This document shows, in pieces, positions 19,001-22,000 of a stretch of DNA of 64,000 bases; position 1 is the first letter of the stretch; the number at the start of each line of letters is the position of its first letter. Origin of the DNA: Octopus sinensis. Taxonomy: Eukaryota. The stretch lies in the NCBI RefSeq assembly GCF_006345805.1, contig NC_043014.1, positions 11,470,001-11,534,000 on the forward strand, read 5' to 3'. The notes below the pieces were generated by a model, which saw only the letters and a list, made by a program, of their open reading frames with translations, ran no database searches and was not told where the DNA came from. The position numbers and the translations under genes were made by a program.

Positions 19001-22000
19001 ATAAAAGTTTCCATAGGCATAGGAGTGGCTGTGTTGTAATTAGCTTGCTTACGAACCACATGGTTCCGGGTTCAGTCCCACTGCATAGCACCTTGGGCAA
19101 GTGTCTTCTACTATGGCCTCGGGCCAACCAAAGCCTTGTGAGTGGATTTGGTAGACGGAAACTGAAAGAAGCCCGTCGTATATATGTATGTTTGTGTGTC
19201 TGTGTTTGTCCCCCCAACATCGCTTGACAACCGATGCTGGTGTATTTACGTCCCCGTAACTTAGCGGTTCGGCAAAAAAAGTGAACCGATAGAATAAGTA
19301 CTAGGCTTACAAAGAATAAGTCCTGCGGTCGATTTGCTCGACTAAAGGCGGTGCTCCAGCATGGCCACAGTTAGAAAATGACTGCAACGAAGCACACACC
19401 CACACAAATATAAATTGCAAAGTACACATACGTGTACAGTTTATTCATATATATCGTGTTTGCCATATATTGTAGTTGCCACGGAACATGCATACCCGTT
19501 CGTTACACATTCATAAGCTCACAAGTGGAGGCGCAATGGCCCAGTGGTTAGGGCAGCGGACTCGCGGTCATAGGATCGCGGTTTCGATTCCCAGACCGGG
19601 CGTTGTGAGTGTTTATTGAGCGAAAACACCTAAAAGCTCCACGAGGCTCCGGCAGGGGGTGGTGGTGATCCCTGCTGTACTCTTTCACCACAACTTTCTC
19701 TCACTCTTACTCCTGTTTCTGTTGTACCTGTATTTCAAAGGGCCGGCCTTGTCACTCTCTGTGTCACGCTGAATATCCCCGAGAACTACGTTAAGGGTAC
19801 ACGTGTCTGTGGAGTACTCAGCCACTTACACGTTAATTTCACGAGCAGGCTGTTCCGTTGATTAGGATCAACCGGAACCCTCGTCGTCGTAACCGACGGA
19901 GTGCTTCCACATAAGCTCACAAATGCCTGCATCAAACGCTGCTGACATGAGAACAGTCACTGGTATAGCAGCGTTTTCAAGAAACAACTACTGACATAGG
20001 CCTTGGCTAATTACCTCCCCTTACGTGTGTATTTTTTTTTTTCCATAGATATTTTATACTATTCAGTAAGGTTTGAAATCTCGTGCATCTCACGTGGACA
20101 AATCCAGAATAGATTTTTGCCTTTTTTTTTTTTTTTTTTCTTTGGAACATTGAGAACTGCAAGTTCCAATTAACAAAACCTAAACTAAAAATGCCTCTCC
20201 TGTCCTAATTTTCTATCAACACGTTTGCATAAAGTCGATTCATGCACACTTACATTGCACTTTTAATGGAGCTTGCTACCTTCATTTCTCTATACCTTCC
20301 CAACTCTTCTGCATTCAGGGACCATCTCTCCCTATCATTTAGTATTGCAATTCGTTTACATTCAGAGTGGCTGTGTGGTAAGTAGCTTGCTAACCAACCA
20401 CATGGTTCCGGGTTCAGTCCCACTGCGTGGCATCTTGGGCAAGTGTCTTCTGCTATAGCCCCGGGCCGACCAATGCCTTGTGAGTGGATTTGGTAGACGG
20501 AAACTGAAAGAAGCCTGTCGTATATATGTATATATATATATATGTGTGTGTGTGTATATGTTTGTGTTTGTCCCCCTAGCATTGCTTGACAACTGATGCT
20601 GGTGTGTTTACGTCCCCGTAACTTAGCGGTTCGGCAAAAGAGACCGATAGAATAAGTACTGGGCTTACAAAGAATAAGTCCCGGGGTCGATTTGCTCGAC
20701 TAAAGGTGGTGCTCCTGCATGGCCGCAGTCAAATGACTGAAACAAGTAAAAGAGAGAGTATACGACCTGCTTTTCACTCTGAGGGAGTCATTAACAGAGG
20801 TAATAGCTCTGTGAGTCTATTCTTATTCAAGCAATTCTCAGAACTTCCTCCTCCTCTGTTAATTAGATTACATAAGTAACACACTCTTTGTGCTATCTTC
20901 ACTCACAAGGCTTAAAGTCCTAGAAGACACTTGCCTAACTACCACATAGTGGGACTGAACCCACGACTGTGAAGTTAGTAAACAACCTGGGAGTTGTGGC
21001 GTGCACCTGTAATCTAGCTACTCGGAGGCTTGGTTGGTTGGCCGGTTTGAGGATGGGAGTCCTGGTAGTCGCTCTTCTATGGCGATCAGGTGTCCGCGCT
21101 AAGCTCGGCATCAATATGGTGCTGGAGAGGGAGCTCATCAGGACCAGGTTGTCTAAGGAGGGTCGCTTCAGCCCAGGGCAGAAACGCAGCAGGCAAAAGG
21201 CCCCGTGTCGAGCAGTAGTGGGATCGCGCCTGTGAATAGTTGTCGGTTAGCAGCCTGTTCAATATAACTGAACACCAATCTATTAAAGAAAAAGGTGGTG
21301 CTCCAGCATGGCCGCAGTCAAATGACTGAAACAAGTAAAAGAGTAAAAGAGTAACCTTCTTAACCACTCAGCCATTTCACAAGTAGTACTTCACGCAAAC
21401 CAGATTTAGTTTGCACATCATTAAGACATCTCTTGAAGGTGGTGAGCTGGCAGAATTGTTAGCATACCAGGCAAAATGCTTAGTGGTATTTCATTTGTCT
21501 TTATGCTCCAAGTTCAAATTCCACTGAGGTCAACTTTACCTTTCATCCTTTCAAGGTTTATAAAATAAGTACCAGTTGAGCACCGGGGTCATGGTAATAG
21601 ACTTTCCTATCCGTCAAATTTGCTGGCCTTGTCAATTATGTATTGTAAGATAGCGAGCTGGCAAAATAGTTACCACGCGGGACCAAATGCTTAGCGGCAT
21701 TTTGTCCATTTTCAAGTTCTGAGTTCGAATTCTGCTGAGGTCGACTTTGCTTTACATCCATTTGGGGTTGCTAAAATAAGTACCAGTTGAACACTGGGGT
21801 TTATGTAATTGACTTACCCACTCCCTGCAGATTGCTGGGGCCTTGTCCCAAAATTTGAAATCAATATTATACTTTCATTATGACAGCAAACTGGGGGAAC
21901 CATTAGCACACTGAACAAAATGTTTAGCAACCTTTTGTCTGTCTTTACATTCTGAGTTCAAATTCCACCAAGGTCAACTTAGCCTTTCGTCCTTTCTTGG

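Follow-up and report, generated by a model that had tools for sequence, protein, structure and literature searches.

A probable template-switch chimera of complete 7SL RNA and a SINE tail in an octopus SEH1 intron

Intron 2 of SEH1 in Octopus sinensis (CM016876.1) carries an insertion in which a complete 7SL RNA sequence, a short linker and the 3′ tail of an abundant SINE follow one another. The 7SL part and the tail share the + strand, and both lie inside one pair of target-site duplications. The element is probably a bipartite chimeric retrocopy that was never functional and that arose when a LINE reverse transcriptase switched templates. The chimera itself has no likely function and can be regarded as a decaying by-product of retrotransposition. 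Positions below are those of the window, the whole 64-kb stretch of DNA that was analysed, in which the features are arranged as follows.

20899..20983, − strand: host SINE head, left part (as seen on the + strand); older, diverged, tRNA-derived and antisense
20984..20987, unstranded: upstream target-site duplication AACC, the same in O. vulgaris
20986..21284, + strand: full-length 7SL/SRP RNA retrocopy with Alu and S domains, ending ...AATCTATT without a T4 terminator
21285..21290, + strand: linker AAAGAA, matching neither 7SL nor the SINE consensus
21291..21352, + strand: 62-nt 3′ tail module of an abundant CORE-like tRNA-SINE, assigned by homology to the consensus
21294-21313, + strand: hairpin 1 of the tail, from fold prediction
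21315-21328, + strand: hairpin 2 of the tail, from fold prediction
21333-21352, + strand: terminal repeats of the AGTAAAAG type, at the 3′ end of the tail
21353..21356, unstranded: downstream target-site duplication, second AACC copy
21357..21382, − strand: host SINE head, right part, containing that element's 5′ end; its sense strand starts GTGAAATGGCTGAGTGGTTAAGAA

Anatomy of the element

The 7SL part was identified by cmscan as Metazoa_SRP (RF00017) at 20986-21283 on the + strand, covering model positions 1-299 of 299 with a score of 223.9 bits (gathering score 70) and an E-value of 4.1e-60. It is the sole Rfam match in the whole window, and its S domain is intact, all RF00017 model positions being matched. 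The orthologous copy in O. vulgaris scores 233.8 bits against the same model. The two copies differ at 8 of 299 positions (2.7%), which compares with 107 of 3620 (2.96%) in the colinear block around them and 3.8% over the locus as a whole; the 7SL part is evidently drifting at the neutral rate, without purifying selection relative to its flanks. No T4 terminator is present at its 3′ end (...CTATTAAAGAAAAAGG), and the nearest downstream T4 run is at 21700, more than 400 nt further on. Because of this neutral-rate divergence and the missing Pol III terminator, the 7SL part is a pseudogene and not a 7SL gene. Nor does it have the structure of an ordinary poly(A)-type 7SL retropseudogene, as 62 nt of SINE tail lie between the A-rich stretch and the duplication.

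Rfam searches of ~255 kb of sequence from four octopods returned no second 7SL. A 93-aa open reading frame runs on the minus strand across tail, linker and 7SL. Compared with a set of 5.8 billion proteins, it had no Octopus copies, and its matches were 7SL-like open reading frames of unrelated eukaryotes, with 58-76% identity over the 7SL part alone. The junction pattern gave 0 hits in a scan of JGI metagenomes, as did the SINE tail core used as a control, this collection holding no Octopus DNA.

The tail (21291-21352, AAAGGTGGTGCTCCAGCATGGCCGCAGTCAAATGACTGAAACAAGTAAAAGAGTAAAAGAGT) departs from the family consensus at a single position in 53 nt, and its homology to the SINE runs from consensus position 136 of 188 to the terminal repeats. 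At up to 3 mismatches, the window contains 15 occurrences of its 53-nt core; its 26-nt core is found 20 times, with 0 occurrences expected from shuffles. Upstream of the other 19 tail copies lies the SINE body or its internal microsatellite; 7SL takes this place here alone. Thermodynamic prediction folds the tail into two hairpins (-17.8 kcal/mol, z -4.06), for which there is one compensatory example. Covariation among the genomic copies was uninformative, as decay after insertion dominates in them and the alignment displaced the one informative sequence. The terminal repeats are built of 8-nt units, and the O. vulgaris orthologue is one unit shorter.

Since the AAA that comes next agrees with the SINE consensus, the linker between 7SL and SINE is only 6 nt long (AAAGAA); it is the same in O. 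vulgaris. We infer that it was either an untemplated addition or derived from a 3′-extended 7SL RNA. The preliminary description of this locus had reported a full-length 7SL, a SINE tail reaching 21352 and AACC at both ends, all of which are borne out by the complete RF00017 match, the 62-nt tail of a SINE with ~20 copies in the window, and the duplications at 20984-20987 and 21353-21356. The A-rich linker that it described is present as well, but the part belonging to neither 7SL nor SINE shrinks to the six bases AAAGAA.

Arrival as one unit and distribution among octopods

The empty site was reconstructed by joining the flanks. With one AACC retained, the joined flanks give an indel-free alignment to 12 other SINE heads; joined without AACC they show a 4-nt gap, and with two AACC a 4-nt insertion. 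The joined flank agrees with ~25 SINE heads of the window, straight across the junction, and the left part of the host SINE head has ~73-79% identity to other SINE heads of the window across the insertion point. An earlier claim that removal of the insert restores an antisense SINE head is thus upheld, as is the claim that 7SL and tail arrived in one event. Given the reconstructed empty site and the identical junction and duplication in O. vulgaris, 7SL, linker and tail appear to have entered the older antisense SINE head as one unit. The single event is read from the reconstruction, the host SINE without the chimera having been found in no allele or species. The first two bases of 7SL (CC) overlap the upstream AACC, so the true duplication could be 2-4 bp. 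As a 4-bp duplication is short and the duplications of ordinary SINE copies are irregular, it carries little statistical weight alone, the statistics of ordinary copies being too noisy to yield a typical length.

At the orthologous locus, O. vulgaris has the same insertion, junction, linker and AACC duplication. A 7SL without the tail, which the preliminary description had named as the sign of two separate insertions, is not seen at this orthologue, where 7SL and tail are both present with the same junction. Neither O. bimaculoides nor Argonauta hians has the insertion at its SEH1 locus. Homology to O. bimaculoides ends exactly where the host SINE starts, so that host and insert are both missing; lacking the host SINE too, O. 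bimaculoides was ruled out as an empty-site control. The insertion was fixed before the split of O. sinensis and O. vulgaris. A Neuralized-like gene is adjacent to the locus, with little of its coding sequence within the flanks.

A second tail fusion and the origin of the chimera

An independent insertion, specific to O. vulgaris and with an empty site in O. sinensis, joins a tRNA-Met-like sequence to a related tail. From 5′ to 3′ it comprises a tRNA-Met-like sequence that is truncated at its 5′ end and has 22 nt inserted next to the anticodon, then a CAAC trailer, TTTTT, AAC and the tail. The tRNA part is identified by a match of 52 of 56 positions to human elongator tRNA-Met. ARAGORN and Rfam made no call on this part, because it is 5′-truncated and carries the insert. 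The tRNA-Met-like transcript was apparently unprocessed, as it retains the intron-like insert, the trailer and TTTTT. Since no Pol III-transcribed SINE is possible with such an internal terminator, the TTTTT argues that the tRNA chimera arose afresh from a primary transcript.

The loci of O. sinensis, O. vulgaris and O. bimaculoides contain 64 tail occurrences; just two of these start at consensus position 135-136, each joined to a Pol III-type RNA. In both chimeras, the junction with the foreign RNA lies 0-3 nt from the base of predicted hairpin 1. With two cases to judge from, the common boundary would be the 5′ base of the two predicted hairpins. The same two cases suggest a machinery that fuses Pol III transcripts to the tail at a fixed boundary.

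For such chimeras, and for the exchange of SINE modules, the literature proposes template switching (PMC2104539, PMC4758252, PMC7245038), and the extra junction bases, together with the unprocessed pre-tRNA of the second chimera, hint at it here. The reverse transcriptase of the SINE's partner LINE would bind the two-hairpin tail of a SINE (or LINE) RNA, prime at the nicked target in SEH1 intron 2, and copy the terminal repeats and then both hairpins. Some 3 nt after passing the 5′ base of hairpin 1 it would abandon that template, a few A-rich bases perhaps being added at the switch, and resume synthesis at the 3′ end of a 7SL RNA close by, which it would copy through to its 5′ end. The cDNA end would then be joined to the target, possibly via CC/ACC microhomology. 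A switch at an AAAGG microhomology, as put forward earlier, is not supported: the 3′ end of 7SL (...CTATT) has nothing in common with the junction. Between the two origins offered at that time, a template switch and a 7SL-SINE family, the evidence favours the template-switch chimera, and the family is less favoured, with one locus in ~255 kb.

A search by RT motifs in the sampled loci returned no LINE carrying the tail. The LINE fragments seen (~25377-25736 in the window, 75545-78205 in locus L003 and 6786-7832 in locus L001) have a different 3′ end or none. If LINE-SINE homology were to start at the same GGCGGTGC, the boundary would be the edge of a LINE-derived module. A young LINE RT fragment of O. 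vulgaris matched mostly ENA contigs at ~50% identity; cuttlefish and turtle were represented, and apparently no Octopus.

A more far-reaching reading, which we consider rather unlikely, is that the locus belongs to, or is the fossil founder of, a 7SL-headed SINE of low copy number in the O. vulgaris/O. sinensis lineage, and that the octopus LINE which recognises the two-hairpin tail routinely fuses Pol III transcripts (7SL, pre-tRNA) to as little as 50-62 nt of tail, always at one boundary and perhaps thousands of times in each genome. Were routine fusion of Pol III RNAs to the tail true, Octopus would be a natural system for the stepwise birth of SINEs.

It is unlikely that the locus is a copy from a 7SL-headed SINE family, in which a Pol III-transcribed 7SL-tail master is mobilised through the borrowed tail. 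The copy does begin within 0-3 nt of the 7SL 5′ end, there is no internal T4 run, so that Pol III could read through to the tail, and the tail clearly supports integration; the hagfish SINE1 was born from just such a chimera of 7SL and a tRNA-SINE (PMC7245038). Yet a single locus (one orthologous pair) was found in ~255 kb, against ~30 ordinary SINE copies per 90 kb (~20 in the 64 kb of the window), and the tRNA chimera shows that fusions form afresh. The S domain is also kept, whereas internal deletion and a uniform multi-copy structure mark SINE1 families off from chimeric retrocopies (Kojima 2020, PMC7245038). No such family is reported in literature mentioning 7SL, SINE and octopus, and 'SINE 7SL' combined with cephalopods returned nothing, which counts as weak evidence. 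If real, a 7SL-headed octopus SINE family would mean that SINE1 had arisen independently a third time, and for the first time in an invertebrate.

Quite unlikely, too, is a joining of the two RNAs first, by ligation as in U6/L1 or by another fusion, followed by retrotransposition through the tail. RtcB-mediated ligation precedes retrotransposition of U6/L1 chimeras (PMC6789731). The fixed 5′ boundary of the tail could likewise mean a preferred site of RNA cleavage at the base of hairpin 1. The RtcB route needs a 2′,3′-cyclic phosphate on the 5′ partner, which U6 has, whereas for 7SL, and for a pre-tRNA with a terminal U-tract, a 3′-OH is expected instead. Moreover, the extra bases AAAGAA and AAC fit addition by a polymerase better than a clean ligation.

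Two insertions, a tail-only truncated SINE and later an A-tailed 7SL retropseudogene exactly at its 5′ edge, are very improbable. The AAAGAAAAA after 7SL does look like a short A-tail, and elements that end in A-runs do occur in this genome. A second duplication would be expected, but no repeat flanks 7SL and its A-run (GTAAACAACC upstream, GGTGGTGCTC downstream), and once the complete insert is taken out, the host SINE is whole again, exact to the base. Of the 64 tails, just one other is a tail-only truncation, and it too is fused to Pol III RNA; no intermediate is present in O. vulgaris. A functional 7SL gene with an adjacent SINE fragment, which the preliminary description had named as a possible refutation, can be dismissed despite the full length, good score and preserved consensus fold of the copy. 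More than 400 nt past the 7SL 3′ end go by without a T-run terminator, the copy lies within an intronic SINE head and is flanked by a target duplication, its divergence between the sister species is that of neutral sequence, and the corresponding loci of O. bimaculoides and Argonauta do not have it.

Relation to known chimeras and 7SL-derived SINEs

Bipartite chimeric retrogenes of mammals comprise U6/L1 and, more rarely, 7SL/L1, tRNA/L1, 5S/L1 and Y RNA/L1, with 7SL/L1 reported as very rare (Moldovan et al. 2019, PMC6789731; bioRxiv 10.1101/2025.02.02.635956). The octopus chimera resembles them in having a small, abundant Pol III RNA as its 5′ part, reaching to or near the 5′ end of that RNA, and the 5′-truncated 3′ end of a retroelement as its 3′ part, in one orientation and within one pair of duplications. 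It differs in that its host is a cephalopod. Unlike the poly(A) L1 of U6/L1, its 3′ partner is a 62-nt structured tail with 8-nt repeats, of the sequence-recognised kind, and both octopus junctions lie at one fixed boundary, whereas L1 positions are variable.

Parallels to the head are found among 7SL-derived SINEs, which the preliminary description had placed mainly in Euarchontoglires and very few other lineages; the hagfish SINE1 family has to be cited in this regard (Kojima 2020, PMC7245038). Like the octopus element, SINE1-1_EBu of hagfish has a 7SL head and a tail borrowed from an older tRNA-derived SINE; the hagfish family is mobilised by a non-L1 LINE (Kojima 2020, PMC7245038), and the octopus element may be too. 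SINE1-1_EBu has 2363 full-length copies that contain the Alu domain alone, the S domain being deleted, whereas the octopus element is known from a single locus and its 7SL is complete. The hagfish family further has a bipartite RTE-derived tail and duplications of ~17 bp, compared with 4 bp in octopus. P7SL_Cpo and P7SL_MD of guinea pig and marsupials (PMC7245038) also contain full-length 7SL, and their status as SINE or retrocopy is uncertain, as is that of the octopus element; they have a poly(A) end and several copies, whereas the octopus element has a sequence-specific SINE tail and one known locus. Alu and B1, the SINE1 elements of Euarchontoglires, are 7SL-derived like the octopus head but, unlike it, are internally deleted, poly(A)-tailed, L1-dependent and present in enormous copy number. 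A fungal LINE chimera likewise shows a non-mammalian LINE reverse transcriptase jumping from its own 3′ end to cellular RNAs, although its 5′ partner is an RNA of unknown function rather than 7SL or tRNA, and its 3′ partner is the LINE itself.

In models of SINE origin, a LINE reverse transcriptase occasionally jumps from its recognised tail to a Pol III transcript, and the intermediates are rarely caught. The octopus locus displays the anatomy of such an intermediate of SINE birth in an invertebrate, a complete 7SL with a minimal tail. This anatomy agrees with the first step proposed for the hagfish 7SL SINE, and the birth model of SINE1-1_EBu requires an intermediate of this kind (PMC7245038). 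A tail of ~50-62 nt, with two predicted hairpins and terminal repeats, may be enough for integration, and the template switch may have one defined place, where the recognised structure has its base. The chimeras thereby offer a concrete and testable definition of the module through which a very successful octopus SINE is recognised. They can also serve as markers, the 7SL insertion being a clean one shared by O. sinensis and O. vulgaris and the tRNA chimera one specific to O. vulgaris.

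The 7SL chimera in its SEH1 intron

The window, which is 100% identical to O. sinensis CM016876.1, holds the entire SEH1 nucleoporin gene on its plus strand (965–46910, from exon-like matches). Within the intron bounded by the exons at 13340–13393 and 24571–24678 lies a full-length copy of 7SL, the RNA of the signal recognition particle, joined to a SINE tail (the 7SL chimera, 20984–21356) and in sense orientation relative to SEH1. On re-reading the sequence, we found this element to be as it had been preliminarily described. Metazoa_SRP (RF00017) was the sole RNA family match in the 64-kb window (Infernal/Rfam; 20986–21283, plus strand, model positions 1–299 of 299, 223.9 bits against a gathering score of 70, E 4.1e-60). 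The last T of 7SL is at 21284, and the next six bases, AAAGAA, match nothing before the tail begins. AACC is found at either end of the chimera (20984–20987 and 21353–21356). As the 7SL copy starts with CC, the CC that ends the upstream AACC could belong to either the repeat or 7SL, so the duplication measures 2–4 bp and 7SL is complete to within 0–3 nt.

Features of the SEH1 gene and the 7SL chimera (window coordinates)
965, 13340, 24571, 26941, 29907, 31583, 35259, 42593 and 46863, plus strand: SEH1-like exon matches
21291–21352, plus strand: SINE tail, AAAGGTGGTGCTCCAGCATGGCCGCAGTCAAATGACTGAAACAAGTAAAAGAGTAAAAGAGT

The tail is abundant. The window has its 53-nt core at 15 places (≤3 mismatches) and its 26-nt core at 20, against a chance expectation of zero. 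A tRNA-derived SINE of roughly 400 nt lies upstream of the 19 other tail occurrences; 7SL is upstream only in the 7SL chimera. This SINE comprises a head (GGAGTGGCTGTGTGGTAAGTAGCTTGC...), a body containing CCTTGGGCAAGT, which we take to be CORE-like, an internal TA/TG microsatellite, and a 3′ half with the tail at its end. There are ~20 such copies in the 64-kb window, on both strands and with varying microsatellite length (e.g., at 3981, 8635, 16594, 20702, 26363, 30868, 43613, 51118, and 63806), and ...TATATAG is the target of many of them. The tail is also present in O. bimaculoides and is not found in the Argonauta locus.

The flanks of the 7SL chimera are those of an older, diverged tRNA-SINE head in antisense orientation (the host SINE). 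Joined with one AACC, they align without indels to 12 other SINE heads, whereas zero AACC leaves a 4-nt gap and two leave a 4-nt insertion. The joined flank matches ~25 SINE heads in the window, continuously over the junction. No duplication was seen in the flanks around 7SL alone or around the tail alone. A single AACC thus restores a collinear SINE head, which means that 7SL, linker and tail fill one insertion site with one short duplication and upholds the earlier claim that they arrived in one event. We base this sequence-derived reading on the reconstruction rather than on duplication length because the duplications of ordinary SINE copies are short and irregular (13 and 8 bp in the clear cases, whereas most are ≤6 bp and indistinguishable from chance).

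A protein search and cluster listing gave the SEH1 loci of Argonauta hians, O. sinensis, O. vulgaris and O. bimaculoides for comparison (L002–L004 for the three Octopus species in this order). At the orthologous site in O. vulgaris the insertion is present, with an identical 7SL-AAAGAA-tail junction and AACC on both sides, and is therefore older than the split between O. sinensis and O. vulgaris. The O. vulgaris copy has one AGTAAAAG unit fewer at its 3′ end. The O. sinensis tail deviates from the SINE consensus at one position; there O. sinensis has GGTGG and O. vulgaris GACGG, both of which could derive from an ancestral consensus GGCGG. In O. bimaculoides, colinear homology ends at ...TTTGTGCTATCT, exactly the host SINE start in O. 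sinensis, and returns about 2 kb on. A check for the orthologous empty site found both host SINE and insert absent; lacking the host SINE, this species provides no empty-site control. No 7SL was found in the SEH1 locus of O. bimaculoides or Argonauta.

The host SINE itself is a head fragment of about 115 nt (20899–20983 and 21357–21382), truncated on its own 3′ side, which is not a normal product of target-primed insertion. Homology with O. bimaculoides breaks exactly at its edge (L004 ~16995), with about 2.1 kb giving way to about 670 bp of unrelated sequence, which points to a rearrangement or deletion here. Annotated SEH1 genes span about 70 kb (O. sinensis, O. vulgaris), 20 kb (O. bimaculoides) and 15 kb (Argonauta), a comparison that involves Octopus gene models of 411 vs 358 aa and an O. 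bimaculoides locus with assembly gaps; intron expansion may account for part of the difference.

A tRNA-like fusion in O. vulgaris

When a 188-nt consensus covering the 3′ half of the SINE was aligned to all loci, the tail was found 64 times (O. sinensis, 32; O. vulgaris, 29; O. bimaculoides, 3), mostly as orthologous pairs. Sixty-two extend into the SINE body. The other two start at consensus position 135–136: the 7SL chimera, and a fusion of a tRNA-Met-like sequence to a related tail (the tRNA chimera).

Second chimera (locus coordinates)
L003 86363–86500 (O. vulgaris OX597833.1), minus strand: tRNA chimera, from alignment of the 188-nt consensus

Its layout is GGCAGCGCGTCAGTCTCATAATCCTAATCTAGCAATCGAGTAATCTGAAGGTTGTGAGTTCGATCCTCACCTGGGGCA-CAAC-TTTTT-AAC-GGCGGTGCATCAGCATGGCCGCAGCTCTGAGCTGAAAC-TAG-A10. 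The first part is identical at 52/56 positions to the 3′ 56 nt of what we take to be the human elongator tRNA-Met sequence. Adjoining the anticodon is a 22-nt insert, whose position fits the canonical tRNA intron site; after the tRNA-like part come a CAAC trailer, a T5 run, and a diverged form of the abundant tail (about 81% identical). ARAGORN and Rfam made no call on this element, as expected for a 5′-truncated tRNA with an insert. The intron-like insert, the trailer and the U-tract suggest direct capture of a primary transcript that had not been processed. The internal T5 would halt Pol III, so the tRNA chimera cannot be a transcribed SINE. It sits in a (TA)n tract, and the corresponding site in O. 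sinensis is empty (L002 ~85983), which makes it young and independent of the 7SL event.

Other tails start their homology at consensus positions 7–53 and represent 5′ truncations or other SINE subfamilies with longer shared 3′ modules; modules are evidently exchanged often in these genomes. In an insertion common to all three Octopus species (L002 5369–5507, L003 5416–5555, L004 6067–6202), the final ~135 nt of the abundant SINE are joined to another tRNA-like head and body. This insertion is either an older module swap or a further SINE family with a longer shared 3′ module.

Proposed switch point and origin of the chimeras

Folding of the tail predicts a pair of adjacent hairpins, GGC.GUGC-UCCA-GCAU.GCC and CAGUC-AAAU-GACUG (-17.8 kcal/mol, vs -8.8 ± 2.2 for shuffles; z -4.06). 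The tail of the tRNA chimera has the same predicted architecture, with hairpin 2 made from different bases (CAGCUC/GAGCUG). Genomic copies are dominated by decay and provided no covariation support for the predicted hairpins. In both chimeras (2/2), the foreign RNA is joined 0–3 nt from the 5′ base of predicted hairpin 1.

The simplest account would be a template switch during target-primed reverse transcription by the partner LINE of the SINE. Its enzyme would bind a SINE or LINE RNA at the structured tail, prime on the nicked target, copy the terminal repeats and both hairpins, and then leave the template at the foot of the structure. It would resume on the 3′ end of a nearby Pol III transcript, 7SL RNA for the 7SL chimera and a nascent pre-tRNA for the tRNA chimera; 7SL would be copied to its 5′ end and the cDNA then joined to the target. 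The extra junction bases (AAAGAA, AAC) would fit untemplated addition or a 3′-extended RNA. Template switching has been put forward as the source of chimeric retrogenes in mammals and fungi and to explain SINE module exchange (PMC2104539; PMC4758252; PMC7245038).

The main mechanistic rival to this template switch is that the two RNAs were joined before reverse transcription. Such joining via RtcB has been shown to produce U6/L1 chimeras (PMC6789731). The RtcB route would require a cyclic-phosphate 3′ end, which neither 7SL nor a pre-tRNA ending in a U-tract is expected to have; on the sequence, this rival is possible but less probable.

The preliminary description had offered a template-switch chimera and a 7SL-SINE family as alternatives. 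Further 7SL was absent from the about 255 kb sampled, in which copies of the ordinary SINE number about 30 per 90 kb. This is a tiny sample of an Octopus genome of roughly 2.7 Gb, however, and the window was itself chosen on account of one of the two chimeras. Outside Euarchontoglires, the only clear 7SL-derived SINE is hagfish SINE1-1_EBu, which has 2363 full-length copies, the Alu domain only, a tRNA-SINE tail, and a non-L1 (RTE-type) partner (Kojima, 2020; PMC7245038). Internal deletion and a uniform multi-copy structure distinguish a SINE1 family from a chimeric 7SL retrocopy (PMC7245038). The octopus element, with full-length 7SL and one known locus, is a chimeric retrocopy by these criteria. 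Its structure would permit Pol III read-through into the tail, yet a low-copy 7SL-headed SINE family seems improbable given that 7SL is full length, at one locus, and otherwise absent from the sample.

A functional 7SL gene is ruled out: its 3′ end (...CTATT) runs straight into AAAG and the nearest downstream four-T run is at 21700, leaving no Pol III terminator, and the copy drifts like its intron, as O. sinensis and O. vulgaris differ by 8 substitutions in the 299-nt 7SL (2.7%), 107/3620 positions of the enclosing colinear block (2.96%), and about 3.8% of the whole locus. The RF00017 scores of the orthologues (223.9 and 233.8 bits) are 10 bits apart, and both are far above the family threshold. 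The 7SL chimera is most likely an inert by-product. It is nonetheless real, cleanly resolved and common to two species, and bears on the minimal tail and the switch point.

In structure, the element is a bipartite chimeric retrogene as defined in mammals (U6/L1; rarely 7SL/L1 and tRNA/L1). Unlike the mammalian chimeras, which have a poly(A) L1 end, its 3′ partner is a sequence-specific, structured SINE/LINE tail, its junction appears fixed (two cases), and its host is a cephalopod. It is built like the intermediate required by Kojima's model for the birth of hagfish SINE1, but is known from one locus.

Neighbouring repeats and LINEs

A 5′-truncated LINE specific to O. vulgaris (L003 75545–78205, minus strand) lies in a (TCTA)n tract and is absent from O. 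sinensis, so a second LINE lineage was mobile after the two species had diverged. Its reverse transcriptase motifs are Tx1/L1-like by eye, and its 3′ end, ...GGCCAATAAAGAAACTTA(TCAA)n, is unlike the SINE tail. In the window, 25377–25736 (plus strand) is an old LINE remnant, a decayed reverse-transcriptase fragment with YTDD and no matching tail downstream; at least its 5′ motif is found at the orthologous position in each of the three Octopus species.

A GC-rich tandem repeat (41625–41781; 62-nt period, 2.6 copies) immediately precedes a SINE 3′ half and may represent either a SINE variant whose 5′ part differs or a separate repeat family. Its relatives recur in the window, with ORF-like matches near 10661–11107, 43966–44361, and 60837–61232. 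Directly after the SEH1 exon at 26941–27069, a long imperfect trinucleotide-type repeat (27068–27672) produces spurious ORFs on both strands, rich in His/Asn/Ile and in Ser/Thr; the repeat is intronic, its start lying past a GTGAGT donor. Just downstream of the 7SL chimera, 21430–21900 holds 2–3 tandem copies of a different SINE-like repeat (GGTGAGCTGGCAGAATTGTTAGC...), which has related copies in O. bimaculoides.
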